Positions 1,903 to 53,844 of a stretch of 64,000 nt of DNA are shown one piece after another. The position numbers and the translations under genes were made by a program. The stretch lies in the sequence record OR770614.1, one strand, 5' to 3'. Below the pieces are notes generated by a model, which was not told the DNA's origin, made no database searches, and saw only the letters and a program-made list of their open reading frames with translations. The stretch's first letter is position 1. Every line of letters begins with the position of its first letter.

Positions 1903-2700
1903 TTATGCATTTGCTGGTTTAGATTCTTTTTTATCACTTTTTTTCCCAGCAGCATTAATAGCTTTAGCAGCAGAAAATGCAGTAGCTAAAGTTTGATTAG
2001 AAAGTTTAATTGATTTAGTAATAGCTGAACTAGATAAAGAATGTGCTTTACTAGCATTTGATGCTACACGTTTGTTTTCATTAATAGCTTCTTTATCTTC
2101 TTTAGCAGCAGCTGCTACACCAGCTTTAGCAGCTTCTTGAGCTTTCTTATTAGATTGAGAAACTACACTAGCTGCAGCTTTAACTTTTGAAACTGAGTAA
2201 GAAGCAGCTTTAACAGCATCTCTAGCGTCAGAGATTTTTTTAATTGAACCTTTTACAATATGTTTCTCATCATTAAGACCAGATTTAGCATTTTCAAATC
2301 CACGATCAAAATGAGGACTATCAGCTTTAGCTAATTCTTGTAAGTTTTTCAAAGCAGATGAAGCTAATAGCGTATAACTTCTAGCTTCTTCTAATTCAGC
2401 TTTTGATTTAACTCCTTCAACATATTTTTTAACGTCAGTTAAACGATATTCTAATTTTTTATATACTTCTACAAAGAAAGTAGTGAATTTTTTAAATGCG
2501 TCTGAAATAGCCTTAGCAATTTTAATAAAGAAATCTTTAGCTTTTTTAGCAAGTTCTCCCGCTTTTGAAGGTTTTTTCTCTTCTTCTTCTTCACTAGCTT
2601 CATTTAGAGCATTAACACTTTCTAAAACAAAAAGTTCTGTTTGAGATGCAGAAAGTTCTTCTTGTAAGAAAGACATTTCAAATGATTGATTTTGCAACAT
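1903..2700 (-). CDS. Putative virion head/internal protein, paralog family A (Ala/Lys-rich)
   Basis: 265 aa; LQEE/LNEA leader and KAKDFFIKIAKAISDAFKKFTTFF helix. Confidence 0.55.
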   Translation of the reverse strand: MLQNQSFEMSFLQEELSASQTELFVLESVNALNEASEEEEEKKPSKAGELAKKAKDFFIKIAKAISDAFKKFTTFFVEVYKKLEYRLTDVKKYVEGVKSKAELEEARSYTLLASSALKNLQELAKADSPHFDRGFENAKSGLNDEKHIVKGSIKKISDARDAVKAASYSVSKVKAAASVVSQSNKKAQEAAKAGVAAAAKEDKEAINENKRVASNASKAHSLSSSAITKSIKLSNQTLATAFSAAKAINAAGKKSDKKESKPANA

Positions 2701-2739
2701 TATATTTTTCCTCCATTTATTTTTAATTTATTTTAATAT

Positions 2740-3828
2740 TTAGAATCTAATATTAAAATCATTTTCTAATTCTTTTCCAATTTCAACGTCAATAGATTCT
2801 GATTCTGATCTAGACTGAACTTCAGCTACACCATCTTCAATATCTATTTTATCAGCTAATTTATTTAATCTTTCAGCCATTTTTTCCTGTTTCTTACGTG
2901 CTGAATCACTAATATCATTATCTTTTTCACCTTCAATAATACTAACAGCATCACGTAAATATTCAGCAAAATCTGAACGTTTTTTAATAAAATAAATATA
3001 AGCTTGTTTAATCATTAATAATACCATTGGAGCTAAGGCAATAACAAGTATTCCACCTGCAGCCACTTTAGTTCCTTTATTTAATGATTTTAATTTATTC
3101 ATGATAGTTCCTAAAGCACCATCTTTATATGCTTCACTAGCATCGTCTGCAAGTTTTTTAAAATCAAATTCTTCATTTGTAGAAACAAATGAGCCATCAA
3201 TTTTAAAAATTTCTTTTAGTTTTCCAGCTTTATATGTTTTTAAAAGATTATCTAAAGTTTTAAGCTCTATTGAATCTTTTTTACTTAATTTTTTATCAGT
3301 GAATTTTAAATTTCCATTAAGATCTTTTTCAAATCCTAAGAAGAAAAGTTGTACTGTAGCTGACATAACAGAAGCAGCTATAGTTGTATAAGTCAATTGA
3401 CCTACTTCATTATCATTTGTAAAACATTTTTTAAAATTTTGTTTTTCTTTTTCAAGCAATTTTACAGAATTCTCAATAGTGTCAAAAGCGAAAATAAGTG
3501 TTTTGTCAAAGCCTTTAGATTTTTGAGCTTTTATGTAATTAAAAGTTTTCTCAAAATCTTTATACGCTTTGATTTTCTTAAAATCACCCTTACTAGAAAG
3601 AATTGATTTTAAGTTTTTATTTCCAGATTTTTTCAACAGTTTATCAGACATTTTAGCTACGCTTAAACCAAGAGCTTCTACTTGCTCTTCAGGTGATAAA
3701 CGTTTAAAAGGTCTGAAGGGTAAAGAGAATTCCTGTAAAACTTTTTGAGACATTGCATCTTCATTTAAAAGATGTTTACGTTCAAGTTCCACAGAGAATT
3801 CCACTTCCTTTCTAGAGTTAATATACAA
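2740..3828 (-). CDS. Hypothetical, probably virion protein
   Basis: 362 aa; late-type promoter AACA-N6-TA at 3888-3899; LLNED/TNEE motifs. Confidence 0.5.
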   Translation of the reverse strand: MYINSRKEVEFSVELERKHLLNEDAMSQKVLQEFSLPFRPFKRLSPEEQVEALGLSVAKMSDKLLKKSGNKNLKSILSSKGDFKKIKAYKDFEKTFNYIKAQKSKGFDKTLIFAFDTIENSVKLLEKEKQNFKKCFTNDNEVGQLTYTTIAASVMSATVQLFFLGFEKDLNGNLKFTDKKLSKKDSIELKTLDNLLKTYKAGKLKEIFKIDGSFVSTNEEFDFKKLADDASEAYKDGALGTIMNKLKSLNKGTKVAAGGILVIALAPMVLLMIKQAYIYFIKKRSDFAEYLRDAVSIIEGEKDNDISDSARKKQEKMAERLNKLADKIDIEDGVAEVQSRSESESIDVEIGKELENDFNIRF

Positions 3829-3969
3829 ATAAAATAAAAATATAGAATCACTACACGCTAATATAATTTTTCTAATTTTATATTTTATAAATAAATGTTT
3901 AAATTAAATAAACCTTAATTTTCTTCATCTTAAGATTTTATATATACATTATAACTAAAAGTTTCTAAA

Positions 3970-16184: not shown

Positions 16185-18389
16185 TTATTCAAATATAAAA
16201 TTAGTTGAACCTGTGTCATATACTTTATTTATATAAGTTTTATTTCTATCAATCTTATTTCTTATATAGCTATCATTACTTGTACCTTTTAAGAAAGTCT
16301 TTTCAATAGGTAATTCATTACCTACTTTATACATTCCAAATTTTTCAAATTTATAACACGTATATGAATCAGATTTTACATTAAAAGTTAAACTTGGAAA
16401 TGTCTTTTTAATTTTAATTAAATCTGCGTCTGTATTTAAAAGTGAAATAAAATTATGTGATACATTAGTCTTATTATTAAAAGAAAATGCACAAATAATA
16501 TAACCTTTATAATAAAGAGCGAAGAAGTCAGAATCTTTCCCATAAAAGTCTTCTGTTGAGTGATTTTCAAAGAAATCTTTAAATGTAAAGAATCCCATAG
16601 ATTTAATTTTCACACCGCCATAGTCTAATACAGAATAATCATCTTTAAATAGTAACAATTGATGTAAGAATTTAGCATAATTCTTACCATCAATTCTTTT
16701 AGTTTCATTACGGATATCATCATCAAATAAATTAAGAAGATGGTATCCTTTTTCTTTAAGTTCATTGTATTTCTTAAGTTGATGATACTTAGCATTTATC
16801 TCAGATTTAGTTTCATTAGAATGATATTTAACTCCATTAACTTCAATAGCCAATTTATGTTCTTTACAGAGTATATCAATTTCTTTACCATCTAATAAAT
16901 CTCTATTCTGTCTTTCTATTTCAAAACCTAAATATTTCATTTCATCAGATACTTTTGATTCAGCAATAGATGATTTTCCATTACTACATGATGGACAATT
17001 AATACCTTTTTCTATTAAGTCATTTGCATTTATTTTAAATTCACCATGGTCTTTACATATTACTATTGATCTTTCATATTTATCGCTAGGTCTAAATTTA
17101 CTCATATTGTATTTATCTTTACCATGTTTAATATTTGCAAGTGTTTGATATACTTCAGTCTTTTCTTTTTCAGTATAATCAAAGTTATTAAGATTTTTAA
17201 TCTTAGTATTAAGTGACTTTATACGTTTATACTCTTTTAATTCTTGAACAGAATATTTTCTCTTATCCTTTATTTTTGGTATTGATTCTGGAATTATTTC
17301 TTTTTTATTTTCATTTGATTCTTTAATATTATCCTTAACTTTATCAATATTAAAATTATTAGAAATTTCTCTTTCTATACTTTCTTTCTTCATGTTCTTT
17401 TTAGCTTTTGGTGTTTTCTTTATACCCTTAAGTAATTTCTCAGTTTCTTCTTCACGTTTCTTTTTATTATTTTCTACAATCTTTTCCCAGTCTTTATCTA
17501 TACTAAGTTTTTCTTCTTCACACTTAGGGCAAGCTAATTTCTTATCAAATAACATTTCGTGTATAGATGTTTTAAATTCACCATGTTTTTCACATATAAT
17601 TGGTTGAACATCTTTTTCGTTAATAGGTCTAAATTTAGAAAAATCATAGTTTGTATTATTAGCTTTATTCAGAGCTAAATCATAAATATGACTTTTTTCA
17701 TCTTCTGTATAATCTTTAGTCAACTCTAAAAATAAATCAGGGTCTATGTCTTTTAAATTATTAAAGATATTTTCAGTAGTTGCAACTTCTCCATCTTTTT
17801 TACAACCTGGACAACCATCAAGATTATTCATAAGAAAATTTTTAACTGAACTTTTAAAGCTACCATGTTTTTCACAGATTATATTTTGTTTAGTATTTAT
17901 ACTGTTTGGTTTAAAATTAGATACATCATAAGGAGAATATAGTCCATATTTAGCTATCGTAACATTATAGAAGAATAAATATTTTTCTTCTTTACTTTTA
18001 TTTTTTAAATATCTAACTTTATCTTTCATTTTAGTAGAGCTATTTAAGAAAAATGTATAAGGTTCTAAATATTCATTAGGATCTTCTACCATAGGAGATT
18101 CAAGTCTCTTAGTTCTTTCTTTATTTTTTAAAAATTTCTCAGCGTTAGCTTTATTTTCATTTTCTCCTAATTCAATTATTCTTAAACAACTTTCAAAATA
18201 ATTATCAAACCATTCTTTACTTTTAACGTATTTAATCGTTCTTATTTTAAATTCTTCAGATATTTTTCCTTTATAAGTTACTTTTAATTTATCTTCATTT
18301 ATTTGATAATCTTTATCATTATCTATATTAAATGTATAGTCTTTACCTAATTTTTCTTTAAAGCTTTCTCTTAATTTTTTACCTAACAT
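16185..18389 (-). CDS. Free-standing homing-endonuclease-like protein: three CxxHG...CPxC Zn-ribbon repeats plus Vsr/Hef-like nuclease domain
   Basis: ICEKHG..GCPGC, ICEKHG..ACPKC, ICKDHG..NCPSC; EIDILCKEHKLAIEVNGVKYHS. Confidence 0.7.
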   Translation of the reverse strand: MLGKKLRESFKEKLGKDYTFNIDNDKDYQINEDKLKVTYKGKISEEFKIRTIKYVKSKEWFDNYFESCLRIIELGENENKANAEKFLKNKERTKRLESPMVEDPNEYLEPYTFFLNSSTKMKDKVRYLKNKSKEEKYLFFYNVTIAKYGLYSPYDVSNFKPNSINTKQNIICEKHGSFKSSVKNFLMNNLDGCPGCKKDGEVATTENIFNNLKDIDPDLFLELTKDYTEDEKSHIYDLALNKANNTNYDFSKFRPINEKDVQPIICEKHGEFKTSIHEMLFDKKLACPKCEEEKLSIDKDWEKIVENNKKKREEETEKLLKGIKKTPKAKKNMKKESIEREISNNFNIDKVKDNIKESNENKKEIIPESIPKIKDKRKYSVQELKEYKRIKSLNTKIKNLNNFDYTEKEKTEVYQTLANIKHGKDKYNMSKFRPSDKYERSIVICKDHGEFKINANDLIEKGINCPSCSNGKSSIAESKVSDEMKYLGFEIERQNRDLLDGKEIDILCKEHKLAIEVNGVKYHSNETKSEINAKYHQLKKYNELKEKGYHLLNLFDDDIRNETKRIDGKNYAKFLHQLLLFKDDYSVLDYGGVKIKSMGFFTFKDFFENHSTEDFYGKDSDFFALYYKGYIICAFSFNNKTNVSHNFISLLNTDADLIKIKKTFPSLTFNVKSDSYTCYKFEKFGMYKVGNELPIEKTFLKGTSNDSYIRNKIDRNKTYINKVYDTGSTNFIFE

Positions 18390-19026: not shown

Positions 19027-19129
19027 TGTTCCTAATGAGATTCGAACTCATAACCTACAGATCCATAAATTATCCTATCCAGGTATAATTCATAAAATCC
19101 GTACACTCTGACCATTGAGCTATAGGAAC
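19027..19129 (-). ncRNA. tRNA-like RNA with anticodon loop replaced by a long hairpin
   Basis: Acceptor GTTCCTA/TAGGAAC, D arm GCTC-AATGGTCA-GAGT, T arm ATGAG-TTCGAAT-CTCAT; 38 nt between TACGG and CTGTA instead of 7. Confidence 0.8.
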
Positions 19130-19136
19130 ATAGAAA

Positions 19137-19208
19137 CTGCTCTAGTTTGATTCGAACAAACAACCTCTTGATTAACAGTCAAGCATTCTACCATTGAATT
19201 ATAGAGCA
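19137..19208 (-). tRNA. tRNA-Asn (GTT)
   Basis: Cloverleaf TGCTCTA/TAGAGCA, anticodon arm CTTGA-CTGTTAA-TCAAG, T loop TTCGAAT, discriminator G; CCA not encoded. Confidence 0.92.
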
Positions 19209-19494: not shown

Positions 19495-19561
19495 ATACTA
19501 TATAGTTAATTAATATTTTTAAATAAAATTTTTTAATAAATAGGAATTTTAGACCAAAAAA

Positions 19562-19631
19562 AGCTTATCCGAGGGATCGAACCCCGGACACATGATGAAA
19601 ATCATTGCTCTACCAACTGAGCTAGATAAAC
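19562..19631 (-). ncRNA. tRNA-like RNA with a 4-nt anticodon loop (Phe-like scaffold)
   Basis: GTTTATC/GATAAGC acceptor, GCTC-AGTTGGTA-GAGC D arm, CGGGG-TTCGATC-CCTCG T arm, anticodon arm ATGAT-TTTC-ATCAT; own early-type promoter 19644-19658. Confidence 0.75.
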
Positions 19632-19678
19632 TTTCTTCATTATTATAATATATGTTTATATTTCACTATATTACGCTT

Positions 19679-21055
19679 TTAATAAATATAATCTTCGATA
19701 TCAATTTCATTTTGTTTAATTGTCATATCATGGAAAGACTTCATGGAGCTTGTTACAATTGCTTGAGCTACCTGATTGACTAATAAACCAATATTTTCAA
19801 TACCTAATTTGTAAGGTAATTCTCCTGCACATTTACTACAAATATCTTCACTCGCACAATACATAGGACTTCTGAAGTTCAATACTTTCTCAATATACTC
19901 ATCTACATTTTCAGGAGTTAATAATATTAATTGACCTTTTCTTCCTGAAGTATTTTCAAAATATCTATAAAGTAAAAGACTTGCATTATCTTTAGTTAAA
20001 GTTAATTTTAATGTATGTTTTGTTCTACAATCAGAACCTTGTTTATCTAATACAGTTGTTTGGAAAGCGGACATAAGTTTTTTAGCTTGATCATTTTATT
20101 ATCTATATTTTACTATAGATTAGACTATATCTTATGAATTTAATCATTTCTATATTTAGTCGTTGGACAACTTTATTAAGTTGATGCTAGTTAGTTTTAA
20201 CATTCTAGCAATTAATAGAATTTATTGTGAGCATCTAATTTACCCACCTTCTTGAGTACCTAAAGCACGTCCAGCTGAACCAGCTGTCATAATATCACCA
20301 AACATATATAATTCTTCTGGATCAATTCCATCAGCTAAAGAACTCTTAGCAATACGTATTTTACTAGGATCAGCAAAATTTTTATTTGCTCCACGAATAA
20401 GAGCTGTTAATTTAAAGTTATTTTCAAAACTACCTCTTGATTTACTATCATAAATATCAAGATCTGCTAAACCTTCTAATTCTTCCTTACTTAACTTAAT
20501 TAATTCTTCTTCAATAGCACTAATAGCATTCAATTCTTCACCAGGAGTATTTAATGCTTTACCGTATTTCTCTAGTAATTCTTCTTTCTTTTGTTTAACT
20601 TTATCTGGAGCAACCATCATTGTAGTTGTTAAGCTAGAATTAATAAATCCTGCTATAGAGAAACCAAGCCATTGAAGTTTATCAATATACATATTCATAT
20701 CTTTAGTTGTAATAACGTCATTAAGTAATAAACTAGATAGTTCAGATTGTAGATTTCCTACACCTGATCCTCCCATATCTTTATTCATATATCCTATAAT
20801 AGGTCCTATTTTATTGTCTAATATAAATTTATTAAATATATATCTTCCAACTGTTGTTCTTTCATCTTTACTATTATAAACTAAATCTTTTTTAAGTTTA
20901 AATCTATCGCTAGGGTTAAACATTGGTTGTGTATTTTGTCTAAATGCAAATAATTCTTTAAGTTTATCAAGAGTAATATCTTCTTTTTTTATACTTAATA
21001 AAGTTGATATTTCTTTCTCAGATAAATCTTTTTTATCATAAGTCATATTAACCAA
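19679..21055 (-). CDS. rpoC: RNA polymerase beta' C-terminal subunit (probably virion RNAP), spliced; exons 21055-20242 and 20091-19679, 408 aa
   Basis: Splicing gives ALGTQEGGYQAKKLMSAF (bridge helix/switch); RSPMYC..ICSKC Zn site; SMKSFH trigger loop; late promoter 21089-21100. Confidence 0.88.
20092..20241 (-). mobile_element. Group I intron, 150 nt, no ORF
   Basis: P1 GTGGGT/GCTCAC with U-G splice pair; P AATTGCTAG, Q CTAGCATC, R TCCAACGACTA, S AAGATATAGTCT; terminal G. Confidence 0.9.
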
Positions 21056-24300: not shown

Positions 24301-25982
24301 CTAATAAAATTGGGGTAGTTAGACAGCTTTCATATAATTCACTAATTAAATCTACTAGAGGTTATACAGATGGTGGTAAAAAAGATGCTAATGACACATC
24401 TCTATATACTCCATTAGAACTACTTAACCCATATTCTAGTAGACATGCCGATGATCAAACATGGATAGTCGGCTTAAAAACTATTTAATTGCTGAAATTA
24501 CTTTAAAGTTAATCAGCATCAATCAAATTGTTCAACGACTAAATAATAGTTACTAATTATATAATTAGTAATGATATAGTCTCAACTATGTATAAAGTAT
24601 ATAGAAATAAGATAATGTCTCCACGTATTGGAATGACTGGTACTCAAGCCAAGCACGTAATTCCAACAAAAACTAATAGTAAACCATTAGTTGGATCTGG
24701 TGTTGATAAATCTTTAGCTTATCAATTATCAGATACATTTGCTTTTAAAGCTAAGCAAGATGGTAAAGTATTAAAAATTAATGAGAAAACTGGTTTAATG
24801 ACAGTGGAATATATCAATGGTGAAAAAGATATTGTTGATATATCTGAAAAATTAGCCAAAAACTCTAACTCAGGTTTTTATCAATCTAATAAACTTGATC
24901 CACAATTTAACGTAGACGACACTTTTAATAAAGGTCAAATACTTGCTAAAAATAATAATTTCTTTGCTGGATCTGGTAAAAATAATGATATTCAATTCAC
25001 TTCAGGTAAATTATCTAAAGTATCTGTAGCTAGCTCATATGGTATTATAAATGCCTTTCATTATAGTAATGTAATGTCAAAAAATTATTAATTGCTGAGA
25101 AATATTAAATTAATCAGCATCTCTATATTTATAGAGTTCAACGACTAAATATAATTATTCATTAATGCTAATGAATTTGATATAGTCTAATCTATTATAA
25201 AAATATAATAGCTAATATAAATGACTTATGAAGATAGTTCTATTATTTCTAGTAGTATGTCTGAAGCAATGTCTACTAAAGTTACTATGAAGAAAACAGT
25301 AAATATTCCATCAAACACAAATATTCAATATATAGTTAAAGAAGGTCAGAAAGTACGTACAGGAGATCCTTTAATGATATTTGAAACTTCATTCGATGAA
25401 GAAGGTATTGGTTCTTTATTAGATAAAATTGGTAGTGAATTTGAACAAGATATTCAAGATATAGCTAACCGAGCTGTTAGAAGTAAATATACAGGTAATA
25501 TTAAAAAGATTAATATTTATTATAATGATGATATTGAAAATATGACTGATAGTTTAGCTAAATTAGTTAATAATTACATTAAAAAATCAAATGATAAATA
25601 TAAAGAATATAAATCTGGAATTAAAAATAATAAAGAAACTTTACCTGGTATTGATGTAGATATCGCTGCAGTTGATAAAATTAATACAGAGAAAATTAAA
25701 GGGGAAAAAGTTGACGGAGTTCTTATTGAAATCTTCACTGAGTATGAAGATGATATGAGTGTTGGAGATAAAATTAGTTTCTATGGAGCTTGTAAAACTG
25801 TAGTTGCTGATGTAACTCCTCCAAATGAATCTCCTTATGCAGAATATAGACCTGATGAGGAAATCGAAGCTGTATTCTCTCCATTAAGTATTGTCTCTCG
25901 TATGACAGTTGATATTTACATGATGCTATTTACAAATAAAGCTTTAATAGAATTAAAACGTAAAGTAAAAGATATGATTTAA
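21372..25982 (+). CDS. rpoB: RNA polymerase beta subunit (probably virion RNAP, phiKZ gp178-like size), spliced; exons 21372-24452, 24618-25043, 25224-25982, 1421 aa
   Basis: KYLKLNGGK, SPDSNKIGVVRQL, spliced HADSPRIGM and SSYGTYED, GDKISFYGACKTVV, PLSIVSRM; late promoter 21324-21335. Confidence 0.88.
24453..24617 (+). mobile_element. Group I intron, 165 nt, no ORF
   Basis: P1 GCCGAT/GTCGGC; P AATTGCTGA, Q AATCAGCATC, R GTTCAACGACTA, S GATATAGTCT; terminal G at 24617. Confidence 0.9.
25044..25223 (+). mobile_element. Group I intron, 180 nt, no ORF
   Basis: P1 GGTAT/ATGCC; same P/Q/R/S core; ends AATATAAATG; splicing yields YG|TYED. Confidence 0.9.
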
Positions 25983-51210: not shown

Positions 51211-53844
51211 TTAAGCTCCTTTACTTTTTATTTTATCAGATACTTTCTTAGCTGCAACATTCAATGGAGGTAAACCATGAAATTCTTGAGCAAATGCTAC
51301 ACTATCTTGACTGTTAAATTTACTAATAAATTCAGTATTAAAGTCGTAATTTAATTTGTCTTCTTCATACTTAGGAACTGTCATTGTAGATTTATCTTGT
51401 ATTTGAATTTTACCTATATGTCCTTCAGGTGTTATATTATATGCTCTAATAATAGATGGATATAGAGCAGTCAAGTCAAAGTCACAAACATTACTAAATA
51501 ATCTATTAGATCTAATATCTCTACCTTTAACTAAAATATCACCCATACGTTCTATTAATGTCATATTAGCTACAAATCCACCACGTATTTTATCTGCGTT
51601 TGGATCAGATAGTATTTTAGAGTGATTATTACTTAATACATATCCTTGATTTTCAAAGAAGACAGAACTACGATTTCTTAAACAAATAGTTTTCTTAAGT
51701 GCTTTACTTGGTCTCGTTCTAGTCATATCTACAATAGAGAATAATAAATCAAACATATTAGTGTTCTTTTCTATTAAAGCAGTTAATACTGTATCTTTAA
51801 TATTGTATAGAATAAATGTATAATAATCTCTAAAATGTAAATCAGAGATAGATCCTTCATATACATCCTTTTTAATACCAGTTTCTTTTTCACCAACATC
51901 ATTTAACTTAACTGATTCCATAACACCATTTGGTTTATTTACATTTGCATATAAAGCTAATTGGTCAATCCAGTTAGTGTATGAGTTAGTTTCGAATGTA
52001 GATGATCTATTAGCTGCATCTGTAGCATTTTTATCTAATCTATAATAAGCTTTTTTATCTTGTAAATCTTTAGAACAGAAATAATCAGCTGGATCTTCTC
52101 CATTAGCTCTGATTCTTTCAAATATAGCAGGAAAATCGTAATCAAGATTCCACTTTTATTTAAATAGACTGTATCTTATTTGTTATTTAAACAAATTTCC
52201 TTATTCAGTCGTTGAACGTATATTAATACGATGCTGATTAGTTTAAACACTTCCAGCAATTAAAGGAATTTTACACGACCTAGAATTTTGATTAAGCCGT
52301 ACATACATCAGGTTTACTAATTTCATTAATATAATATAAAAATGCTTTTATAATTTCCATTTCAGATTCTAATTCATATATTTCAAATTCTAATCCTAGA
52401 TTACCAATTTTACTATTTTCATTATTATAAATATTATTTAAATCTTCTAACAGTTTACTTTTATTTTCCATAGTTTCTTTATAAGTATCTGTATCATATT
52501 TTAAAGCAAATGTTAAACATTTACGTTTACTCCAGTCAACAGCAGTTATAATATTAACTTCAGCCTCTGCTTTTTCTGGTTCAGGGACATTTATATTAAC
52601 TTTATACAATTGTATAAAGATTAGACTATATCTTTTAAATTCAAATATATTTCCATTTAAAATTTTTGTAAGTTTTACTATTTCTATAACCATTTGCAAC
52701 TGCTTGTATTCCTTTTCTATCTATATTTAATTCTTCCGCTGCAAATTTAGCACTTTCATATTCTTTTATAATTTTATCTGTTTCTTTATCTATTTGTGCC
52801 ACTGGTTTTCTTCTCTTTTTTAATGATTCTTCCATTTTATCAGTTTTATGAAGATTATTTTCTATAGCATGTAAATTATTTTCTAATACTGACATCCATT
52901 CTAAATTAGATAAATTATTATTTAATTTATTACCGTCAATATGATTAACTACATTTTTATCAATATCTTTATTTTCGATAAAATTCTCTGCAACTAAACG
53001 GTGTATTCTTCTTGTATGCTTCTTATTATTTTTATATAATTGAACATCTTCATAACCATTTTTATTTATTCTTGTCTTTAATACTCTTTCTTTAATAAGC
53101 ATTCTTTTATCTTTACCTTTTAAAGAATCATTATATACATATCTTGAAACCGATTTAACTTTACCAGTATTGGATATTTTATAGTAATTTTCAAAATCTT
53201 TAATGTCTTTCCATATTTCTTTCATTATTTTCCTCCTTTTATAAAGGAAGTATATTTGAATTATATTATTATATTTAGTCGTTGAACACTAAATTAGTGA
53301 TGCTGATTATTTTTAAACTTTTCAGCAATTAATAATTTTTTAATTGAGCTACCTAAATTAACCCAACTGTTTGCGAAGAATCAACTTCTATATCAAAGAA
53401 AACTATATCAATTCCAACTTTACTATCTAAGTTTTGTTTGATATACTCATTAATATTATAATCTTCAATATTAATATCAGATCCATGAACATTATTCATT
53501 AAATGAAAATCTTTTAATTTTCTAAACTCTTCATAATTACCTGAAGATAATATTCTATCGTATTCTGATTTATCTTGAGCATTACCTGCTTCTCTAACTA
53601 TAGATTTAATAACATCTTTATGTTTACAGTGTACAGTTCTAACTTTTTCTTTAGCCATAGAACCTACAACTATATTAGGTGGTAACCAATGTTCATCTTT
53701 AGTTACATAATAATGCATCATAGGATCTACTATTTCCATATGTTTCTTAGTTCCATCTTCTTCTTTGACTACCATTACTACTTTTTCTTTTTTATTAGAT
53801 GTTTCTTTTTTATTCAAATATGTTGATTTTATAAAACGACCCAT
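51211..53844 (-). CDS. Family B DNA polymerase, N-terminal half (exonuclease plus motif A), spliced; exons 53844-53361, 52587-52295, 52152-51211, 572 aa
   Basis: Splicing restores FFDIEVDSSQTVG|FPEPE and CTA|WNLDYD; YNIKD ExoIII; DFDLTALYPSII motif A; no motif B/C. Confidence 0.9.
52153..52294 (-). mobile_element. Group I intron, 142 nt, no ORF
   Basis: P1 TACGGCT/GGTCGTG; P4 TGCTG/CAGCA; P7 GACTG/CAGTC (covariant with GACTA/TAGTC of the sister introns); terminal G at 52153. Confidence 0.9.
52588..53360 (-). mobile_element. Group I intron, 773 nt, with HNH endonuclease ORF in P8
   Basis: P1 TTGGGT/GCTCAA; P/Q/R before the ORF, S AAGATATAGTCT after it; ends AATATAAATG. Confidence 0.9.
52641..53225 (-). 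CDS. Intron-encoded NUMOD4-HNH-NUMOD1 homing endonuclease (I-HmuI-like)
   Basis: EIWKDIKDFENYYKISNTG, IHRLVAENF, VNHIDGNKLNN..NLEW, YESAKFAAEEL; SD AAGGAGG. Confidence 0.92.
   Translation of the reverse strand: MKEIWKDIKDFENYYKISNTGKVKSVSRYVYNDSLKGKDKRMLIKERVLKTRINKNGYEDVQLYKNNKKHTRRIHRLVAENFIENKDIDKNVVNHIDGNKLNNNLSNLEWMSVLENNLHAIENNLHKTDKMEESLKKRRKPVAQIDKETDKIIKEYESAKFAAEELNIDRKGIQAVANGYRNSKTYKNFKWKYI

Follow-up and report, generated by a model that had tools for sequence, protein, structure and literature searches.

A 150-nt insert with group I intron anatomy in the gene for the virion RNA polymerase β′ subunit of a Staphylococcus jumbo phage

The DNA analysed (the window, the whole stretch of 64,000 nt) has a GC content of 24% and comes from a Staphylococcus jumbo phage of the PB50/Machias-like kind. 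A gene for the β′ subunit of the virion RNA polymerase (RNAP) lies on its minus strand in two pieces:

20242..21055, minus strand: exon 1 of the virion RNAP β′ ‘mid’ gene (ORF list, PHROG 2962, PB50 match)
20092..20241, minus strand: ORF-less intron of 150 nt, very probably group I (indel, Rfam RF00028, RNA contigs)
19679..20091, minus strand: exon 2 (PHROG 2962; follows exon 1 without a break in Madawaska, DC4 and AR9 g264)

The exon 1 protein has 99.6% amino acid identity to the ‘viral RNA polymerase beta-prime subunit’ of vB_StaM_PB50, 97-98% to its counterparts in Machias and AH12 and 84% to those of the S6/Madawaska/DC4 group. Identity to the Bacillus phages AR9 and PBS1 is 45%; the AR9 orthologue, g264, is annotated in its record as a piece of the virion-RNAP β′ subunit, and this piece of the β′ gene is named the ‘mid’ domain by Korn et al. 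(bioRxiv 10.1101/2020.12.14.422802). Exon 1 starts at either TTG 21055 (the PB50 annotation) or ATG 21046 (the Machias annotation). When the exons were searched separately, exon 1 matched PHROG 2962 at profile positions 40-301 (E 1e-40) and exon 2 matched it at positions 303-432 (E 2e-27); the uninterrupted Madawaska gene served as a stand-in for the spliced product. Just downstream of the β′ gene there are three tRNA-type genes on the minus strand (19027-19129, 19137-19208 and 19561-19632), which comprise one normal tRNA-Asn, one gene whose anticodon arm is longer by about 34 nt and a third whose anticodon loop is shortened; the Machias record labels these pseudo-tRNAs.

Comparison with relatives defines the insert. 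Madawaska and DC4 have the β′ gene as a single unbroken CDS of 1227 nt, and on alignment these genomes lack exactly the 150 nt in question: the intronless site reads ...GGCGGGT/ACCAAGC and the studied DNA GGTGGGT/[150 nt]/ATCAAGC, the strokes marking the boundaries. The gene is unbroken in at least six relatives, and every sequenced genome of the close clade, three in number (PB50, Machias and AH12), has the intron, the Machias copy at the same site being 97% identical to the studied one. The insert, 20241..20092, has a GC content of 22% and stops in every one of its three frames, so that no endonuclease ORF is encoded within the 150 nt. The initial annotation had placed it at 20092-20241, which is exact; the feature lies on the minus strand, with exon 1 ending at 20242 and exon 2 starting at 20091. 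G20092 is the last base of the intron only in the placement where a U also precedes the 5′ splice site; it is the terminal G expected of a group I intron.

The consequence for the reading frame is equally clear. Exon 1 finishes ...GGT GGG T, its protein ...GRALGTQEGG, and its last base, U20242, is base 1 of a tyrosine codon; reading on leads to TAA. Exon 2 opens AT CAA GCT AAA AAA CTT, supplying the AT of that codon and then QAKKLMSAFQ..., and runs to a stop codon at 19681-19679. The description of a GG-stop that becomes GGYQAKKL on excision is thus accurate to the base, with U20242 plus AU giving Tyr, followed by QAKKL. The Madawaska protein segment gsagralgtqeggyqakqlmsafqttvld aligns to solved bacterial β′ chains (8dy7_D, E 1.5e-4), and the segment opposite 8dy7_D is, as judged from this alignment, the β′ bridge helix. 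Because of this alignment the intron can be placed within the Tyr codon, in phase 1, of SGY(LTRRL), and its assignment to the bridge-helix junction is upheld.

The elements of the group I core were located within the insert and its flanking exon as follows:

20247-20242 / 20232-20227, minus strand: P1, exon GUGGGU with internal guide GCUCAC, 6 bp (MFE fold)
20220-20215 / 20153-20148, minus strand: P3, UUCUAU/AUAGAA
20210-20205 / 20190-20185, minus strand: P4, UGCUAG/CUAGCA, invariant or compensatory in all copies
20184-20168, minus strand: P6 hairpin, CAACUU AAUA AAGUUG, 6 bp
20167-20162, minus strand: J6/7
20161-20157 / 20127-20123, minus strand: P7, GACUA/UAGUC
20147-20134, minus strand: P8 hairpin, 4 bp
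20133-20128, minus strand: J8/7, AAGAUA
20119-20102, minus strand: P9 hairpin, 6-7 bp (fold)

At the 5′ splice site P1 ends in a U20242-G20232 wobble, as is characteristic of group I introns, and GAU at 20235-20233 could pair with AUC, the first bases of exon 2, in a putative P10 of 3 bp. P1 is joined straight to P3 by J1/3 (AAUAAA). P3 (20148..20220) in turn encloses P4, a vestigial P5, P6 and the 5′ strand of P7; its 3′ strand (20153-20148) adjoins P8 (20147-20134) with no helix between. P4 has an A-rich, J4/5-like loop; the vestigial P5 could form only about 2 pairs and in the studied copy fails to fold by itself. The stretch 20123..20167, made up of J6/7, P7, P8 and J8/7, is the guanosine-binding core, and 3′ of P9 there is a tail of 10 nt ending at the terminal G20092. 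All the helices named in the initial annotation were found (P1, P4, P6, P7, P8 and P9), and P3 is present too, though it had gone unnamed; ‘complete P4-P6’ is slightly generous, P5 being vestigial. That there are essentially no peripheral domains agrees with the helix parse, from which P2, P7.1/7.2 and P9 extensions are all absent. Subgroup IA2 (the T4 td/Twort type) was considered and rejected, there being no P7.1/P7.2, no P2 and no P9 extension; the intron was not filed there because P7.1/P7.2 are missing and J1/3 links P1 directly to P3. Its J8/7-P7 sequence does resemble that of phage introns.

A local search of 501 nt with the Rfam model RF00028 (Intron_gpI) gave 34.6 bits (E 3e-7), with model positions 1-253 aligned end to end. 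This falls below the RF00028 gathering score of 50, which is a database cut-off and not a biological criterion; the shortfall is due to the missing P2, the length of P8 and other missing peripheral parts. Both a gathering-score scan and an E-value scan with Rfam over the whole 64,000-nt window missed the intron. Within the alignment the core strings CAACGACUAAAU (J6/7-P7-J7/3) and AAGAUAUAGUCUAAUCU (J8/7-P7) follow the Rfam consensus with high posterior probability, and 20123..20167 matches the consensus CAAxGACUAAA ... AAGAUAUAGUCUAAUCU at the guanosine site and its junctions. The minimum free energy fold, compared with shuffled sequences, has z = -3.1. Taken with the Rfam E-value and the exact indel, this fold score sets the insert apart from chance.

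Further evidence comes from the paralogues of the intron. For a pattern spanning the core from one P7 strand to the other, PB50 has 17 occurrences, Machias 27, Madawaska 11 and LY01 30; AR9 has 0, and the reversed control pattern also gave 0. In agreement with this, a blastn search with the intron found 17, 24, 25, 24, 11 and 8 places in six phages. Members range from about 142 to 180 nt, and 58 copies were parsed in a fixed register. At the six P3 positions 95-100% of these copies have canonical pairs, of 3-6 pair types each, against 59% for shuffled partners; for P6, where pair types are likewise numerous, 96% are canonical, against 63%. A P5 of 4-6 bp is present in 31/58 copies and a stem of any sort in 32/58.

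A U-G guide in the register of the target was present in 27/58 copies; removal of 1 identical duplicate and 1 P2-containing false positive (L042) left 25 (alignment A3), which are distinct, P2-less like the target and located at different insertion sites. The P1 guide was taken as the six bases 12 nt upstream of UAAUUGC, its partner as the exon hexamer ending in U. Although the exons differ by site, P1 pairing with the U-G is 6/6 in 24 of the 25 and 5/6 in the remaining one; when guides were swapped between copies only 12% reached 6/6 pairs. Across A3 as a whole 100% of 475 cells are paired, compared with 22-45% in slid controls, and the covariation score is 0.32, compared with 0.08 for shuffles. 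Changes on both sides are seen in eight pairs; double changes affect 5 of the 6 P3 pairs and one P7 pair. In the tally of 58 copies P7 has one double change, GACUG/CAGUC, in the copy at 52153-52294 on the minus strand. The P3/P7 pseudoknot is backed by these compensatory changes. P8 and P9 vary in sequence between copies with their pairing kept. P1, P3, P6, P8 and P9 vary by compensatory substitutions across the family. RNAalifold, run on a mixed alignment of 8 sequences, drew P4, P7 and P8 only, the P3/P7 pseudoknot being beyond what it can draw.

P8, a helix normally conserved in the group I core, is absent in 10 of the 25 P2-less copies, from PB50, Madawaska and LY01 (L049, L061, L062, L065, L072, L079, L084, L087, L088 and L093), in which a linker of 5-6 nt, for example CUAAG, lies between the 3′ strand of P3 and J8/7.

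The P3/P7 pseudoknot, the U-G pair in P1 and the terminal G constitute the defining anatomy of group I, and all are found here. Based on the whole-model Rfam alignment, the U-G wobble, the terminal G and the compensatory changes in P3 and P7, the insert in the virion RNAP β′ ‘mid’ gene is very probably a true group I intron in miniature.

Removal of the insert at the RNA level was sought in Logan contigs of four runs, two from RNA libraries and two of DNA type. In a 1485-nt contig from a tick metatranscriptome (X1) and a 259-nt contig from a gut metatranscriptome (X7), which belong to two separate studies, 20090 is joined to 20241 and 150 nt are skipped. Since A20241 and A20091 are the same base, the position of the joint is ambiguous by 1 nt; it amounts to excision of 20241..20092, and within that ambiguity it agrees with the boundary at G20092. 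The contigs of two indoor DNA metagenomes (X2 and X3) continue through the intron (19706-20257). They also carry, at 20257, the upstream intron of the Machias type described below. Both joined contigs are thus from RNA libraries and none is from a DNA library. X1 and X7 differ from the studied sequence at about 3% of positions; the precise removal and the restored frame that they display, in assembled contigs of a strain about 97% identical, support splicing of the studied gene, though short of proof, since carry-over of DNA is possible. Splicing had also been held to be necessary for a functional subunit, and this is in keeping with the division of one PHROG profile between the exons (301/303) and with the absence of the 150 nt from the RNA contigs. 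In X2 and X3 the contig depth over 20151-20191, in the P6-P7 core, exceeds the depth over the exons on either side about 8-10-fold, which is consistent with the many genomic copies of the core.

The joined form could alternatively be nucleic acid (DNA or RNA) from a strain that naturally lacks the intron rather than spliced mRNA, in which case the contigs would carry no information on the splicing of the studied allele. Intronless alleles do exist in nature, at 84% amino acid identity, metatranscriptomes can contain DNA, and X1 and X7 diverge from the studied sequence by roughly 3%. This explanation is nevertheless improbable: the intron is carried by PB50, Machias and AH12 alike and by the DNA contigs X2 and X3, which share most of the X1 variants, the joined contigs are both (2/2) from RNA libraries, and X1 also lacks the Machias-type upstream intron. 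A split gene, with the insert as a mere spacer and ORFs of 271 aa and 131 aa (the latter from the in-frame ATG at 20074) assembling as separate polypeptides, would fit the two separate CDSs annotated in the PB50, AH12 and LY01 records and the natural division of jumbo-phage β and β′ among several genes (PMC7598289). Such a break would cut the bridge helix, losing the six residues YQAKKL, and no Shine-Dalgarno-like sequence precedes ATG 20074 (upstream bases AAGCTAAAAAACTT); for these reasons the split gene is very unlikely, indeed scarcely credible, and was rejected. It is further at odds with a full group I core showing covariation, with RNA-library contigs that lack exactly the 150 nt and with a gene that is uninterrupted in at least six relatives. 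Translational bypass was likewise ruled out by the full ribozyme core in the insert.

A more serious question is whether the RNA acts alone. It could be a group I-derived intron that no longer self-splices and needs a phage or host maturase or chaperone, or that splices only in the intracellular setting. The absence of P2, P7.1/7.2 and P9 extensions, the vestigial P5 and the GC content of 22% all point this way, as does the loss of P8 from 10/25 sister copies, which suggests a tolerated loss of scaffold and perhaps a shared factor; a single helper acting in trans would go well with the large number of near-identical cores in each genome. Against this, every element of the catalytic core and the junction sequences match the group I consensus, the helices are maintained by compensatory change and no candidate maturase was identified; moreover, the Azoarcus intron self-splices at 205 nt. 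Dependence on a helper is thus rather unlikely, if far from negligible. It is quite possible, and we suggest it tentatively, that the 150-nt RNA and its sisters of 142-180 nt, those without P8 included, are natural self-splicing ribozymes far below 205 nt. With a GC content of 22%, a vestigial P5 and no stabilising periphery, the RNA may need protein or high Mg2+ to fold.

A self-splicing group I intron at this locus would be expected to act as follows, the steps being inferred from group I chemistry. After transcription, P1 would form between the guide GCUCAC and GUGGGU, the final six bases of the exon, and free guanosine bound in P7 would attack after U20242. The terminal G20092 would then occupy the guanosine site and the exons would be joined, rebuilding the bridge-helix Tyr codon and giving one subunit of 408 residues.

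Introns in these RNAP genes have already been published, and the main interest of the present one is its small size. Korn et al. (bioRxiv 10.1101/2020.12.14.422802) predicted, for Machias, MarsHill and Madawaska, introns in a number of genes that include those for RNAP, DNA polymerase and terminase; those predictions concern the same virion RNAP β′ mid gene in the same phage clade, and were inferred from protein alignment only, with no class, fold or exact splice sites given. For introns of Bacillus phage AR9, that preprint cites Lavysh et al. 2016 for mature mRNAs determined experimentally. In AR9 itself g264 is uninterrupted and the core pattern of the family is lacking, in contrast to the gene studied here. 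The DC4 paper found no introns with Rfam.

Parallels are also offered by the huge gut phages known as Jug, which have about 18.5 small group I introns per genome with a mean length of about 206 nt, their splicing being supported by metatranscriptome mapping (PMC12880540). Both systems combine a large number of short, ORF-less group I introns, located in essential genes, with numerous free-standing homing endonuclease genes. The studied intron differs in being shorter (150 nt, in a family of about 142-180 nt), in scoring below the Rfam gathering score and in its host, a Firmicute phage with an AR9-type RNAP. In PhiPA3 a jumbo-phage RNAP gene also contains a group I intron; according to PMC11620839, that intron is mobile and encodes its own homing endonuclease, gp210, whereas the one described here is ORF-less, and the biology of the PhiPA3 intron and endonuclease is tied there to competition between co-infecting phages. 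Repeated targeting of the bridge helix, as described below, fits a role of introns and endonucleases in competition between co-infecting jumbo phages.

As regards size, the usual point of reference is the Azoarcus tRNA-Ile group I intron, which at 205 nt is usually cited as the smallest natural self-splicing one. Both are compact group I cores with few peripheral elements. The Azoarcus intron, a GC-rich and very stable RNA, has retained P2, tetraloop-receptor contacts and a full P5; the studied intron has no P2, a vestigial P5 and a GC content of 22%, and is 55 nt shorter. We know of no group I intron of 150 nt or less that naturally self-splices. If it does self-splice, it would be a new minimal natural scaffold, with no P2, no real P5 and a P8 of 4 bp, and a useful minimal model of what a group I ribozyme requires, with a bearing on compact splicing or circular-RNA tools. 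There are also consequences for annotation and detection: the two β′ fragments listed for PB50 (the nearest GenBank record), AH12 and LY01 represent one spliced gene, and standard Rfam scans miss this family of mini-introns.

The same region is interrupted in other ways among relatives. Machias (L002:3307-3483), AH12 (L004) and LY01 (L005) have a second mini-intron 16 nt upstream, a group I intron of about 177 nt with a P2 hairpin, and the 16-nt micro-exon between the two is ACTCAAGAAGGTGGGT (TQEGG). The Machias record (GenBank MW349128, CPT_Machias_171) annotates the β′ gene as a single join of 2 pieces, whereas its DNA contains two inserts, read here as two introns, round this micro-exon. 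At the studied site the LY01 copy has compensatory changes in P3 and P9 (P9 UCUGUA/UACAGA) and has lost P8, and in a metagenomic relative (L097, 77% amino acid identity) the GGTGGGT/ site is likewise occupied by a mini-intron. In a more distant metagenome contig (L099, 47% amino acid identity) this site is filled by an ORF-containing intron (2306-3873) that shares the guide GCUCAC and whose ORF lies in L5 and encodes at least 484 aa with DUF7487 and a zinc ribbon; in another (L098, 41% amino acid identity) an ORF-bearing group I intron (2299-3362) lies 7 nt upstream. Among these relatives three insertion sites thus fall within 23 nt, which makes the bridge-helix codons a hot spot for insertion.

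About 1.3 kb downstream of the intron-bearing gene there is a free-standing gene of 734 aa (16185-18389, minus strand) that matches the homing-endonuclease PHROG 3339 and in which a Vsr-like nuclease (DUF559) is combined with zinc fingers of the treble-clef type (DUF723, DUF4379). It has a Vsr-like nuclease block in common with the L099 intron ORF (E 1e-7), and in AR9 a ‘Hef-like homing endonuclease’ occupies the same position downstream of the β′ gene. This endonuclease may be linked to the intron; since the gene slot is also filled in the intronless Madawaska, DC4 and AR9, we claim no specific partnership between the two. The studied intron would most likely be the ORF-less descendant of a mobile, endonuclease-carrying intron aimed at the conserved bridge-helix site, the simplest history being that a homing intron lost its ORF and then shrank. 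It would now belong to a family of nearly bare cores with 17-30 members per genome, the spread of which is possibly still driven by free-standing endonucleases.

Other members of the family are found in the window. ORF-less introns at 24453-24617 and 25044-25223, both on the plus strand, lie in the virion RNAP β gene, and the ORF-less intron at 52153-52294 (minus strand) lies in another gene. A larger member at 52624-53330, also on the minus strand, has about 640 nt between its 5′ and 3′ P7 strands and contains an HNH-endonuclease ORF at 52641-53288 (PHROG 59, E 2e-47).
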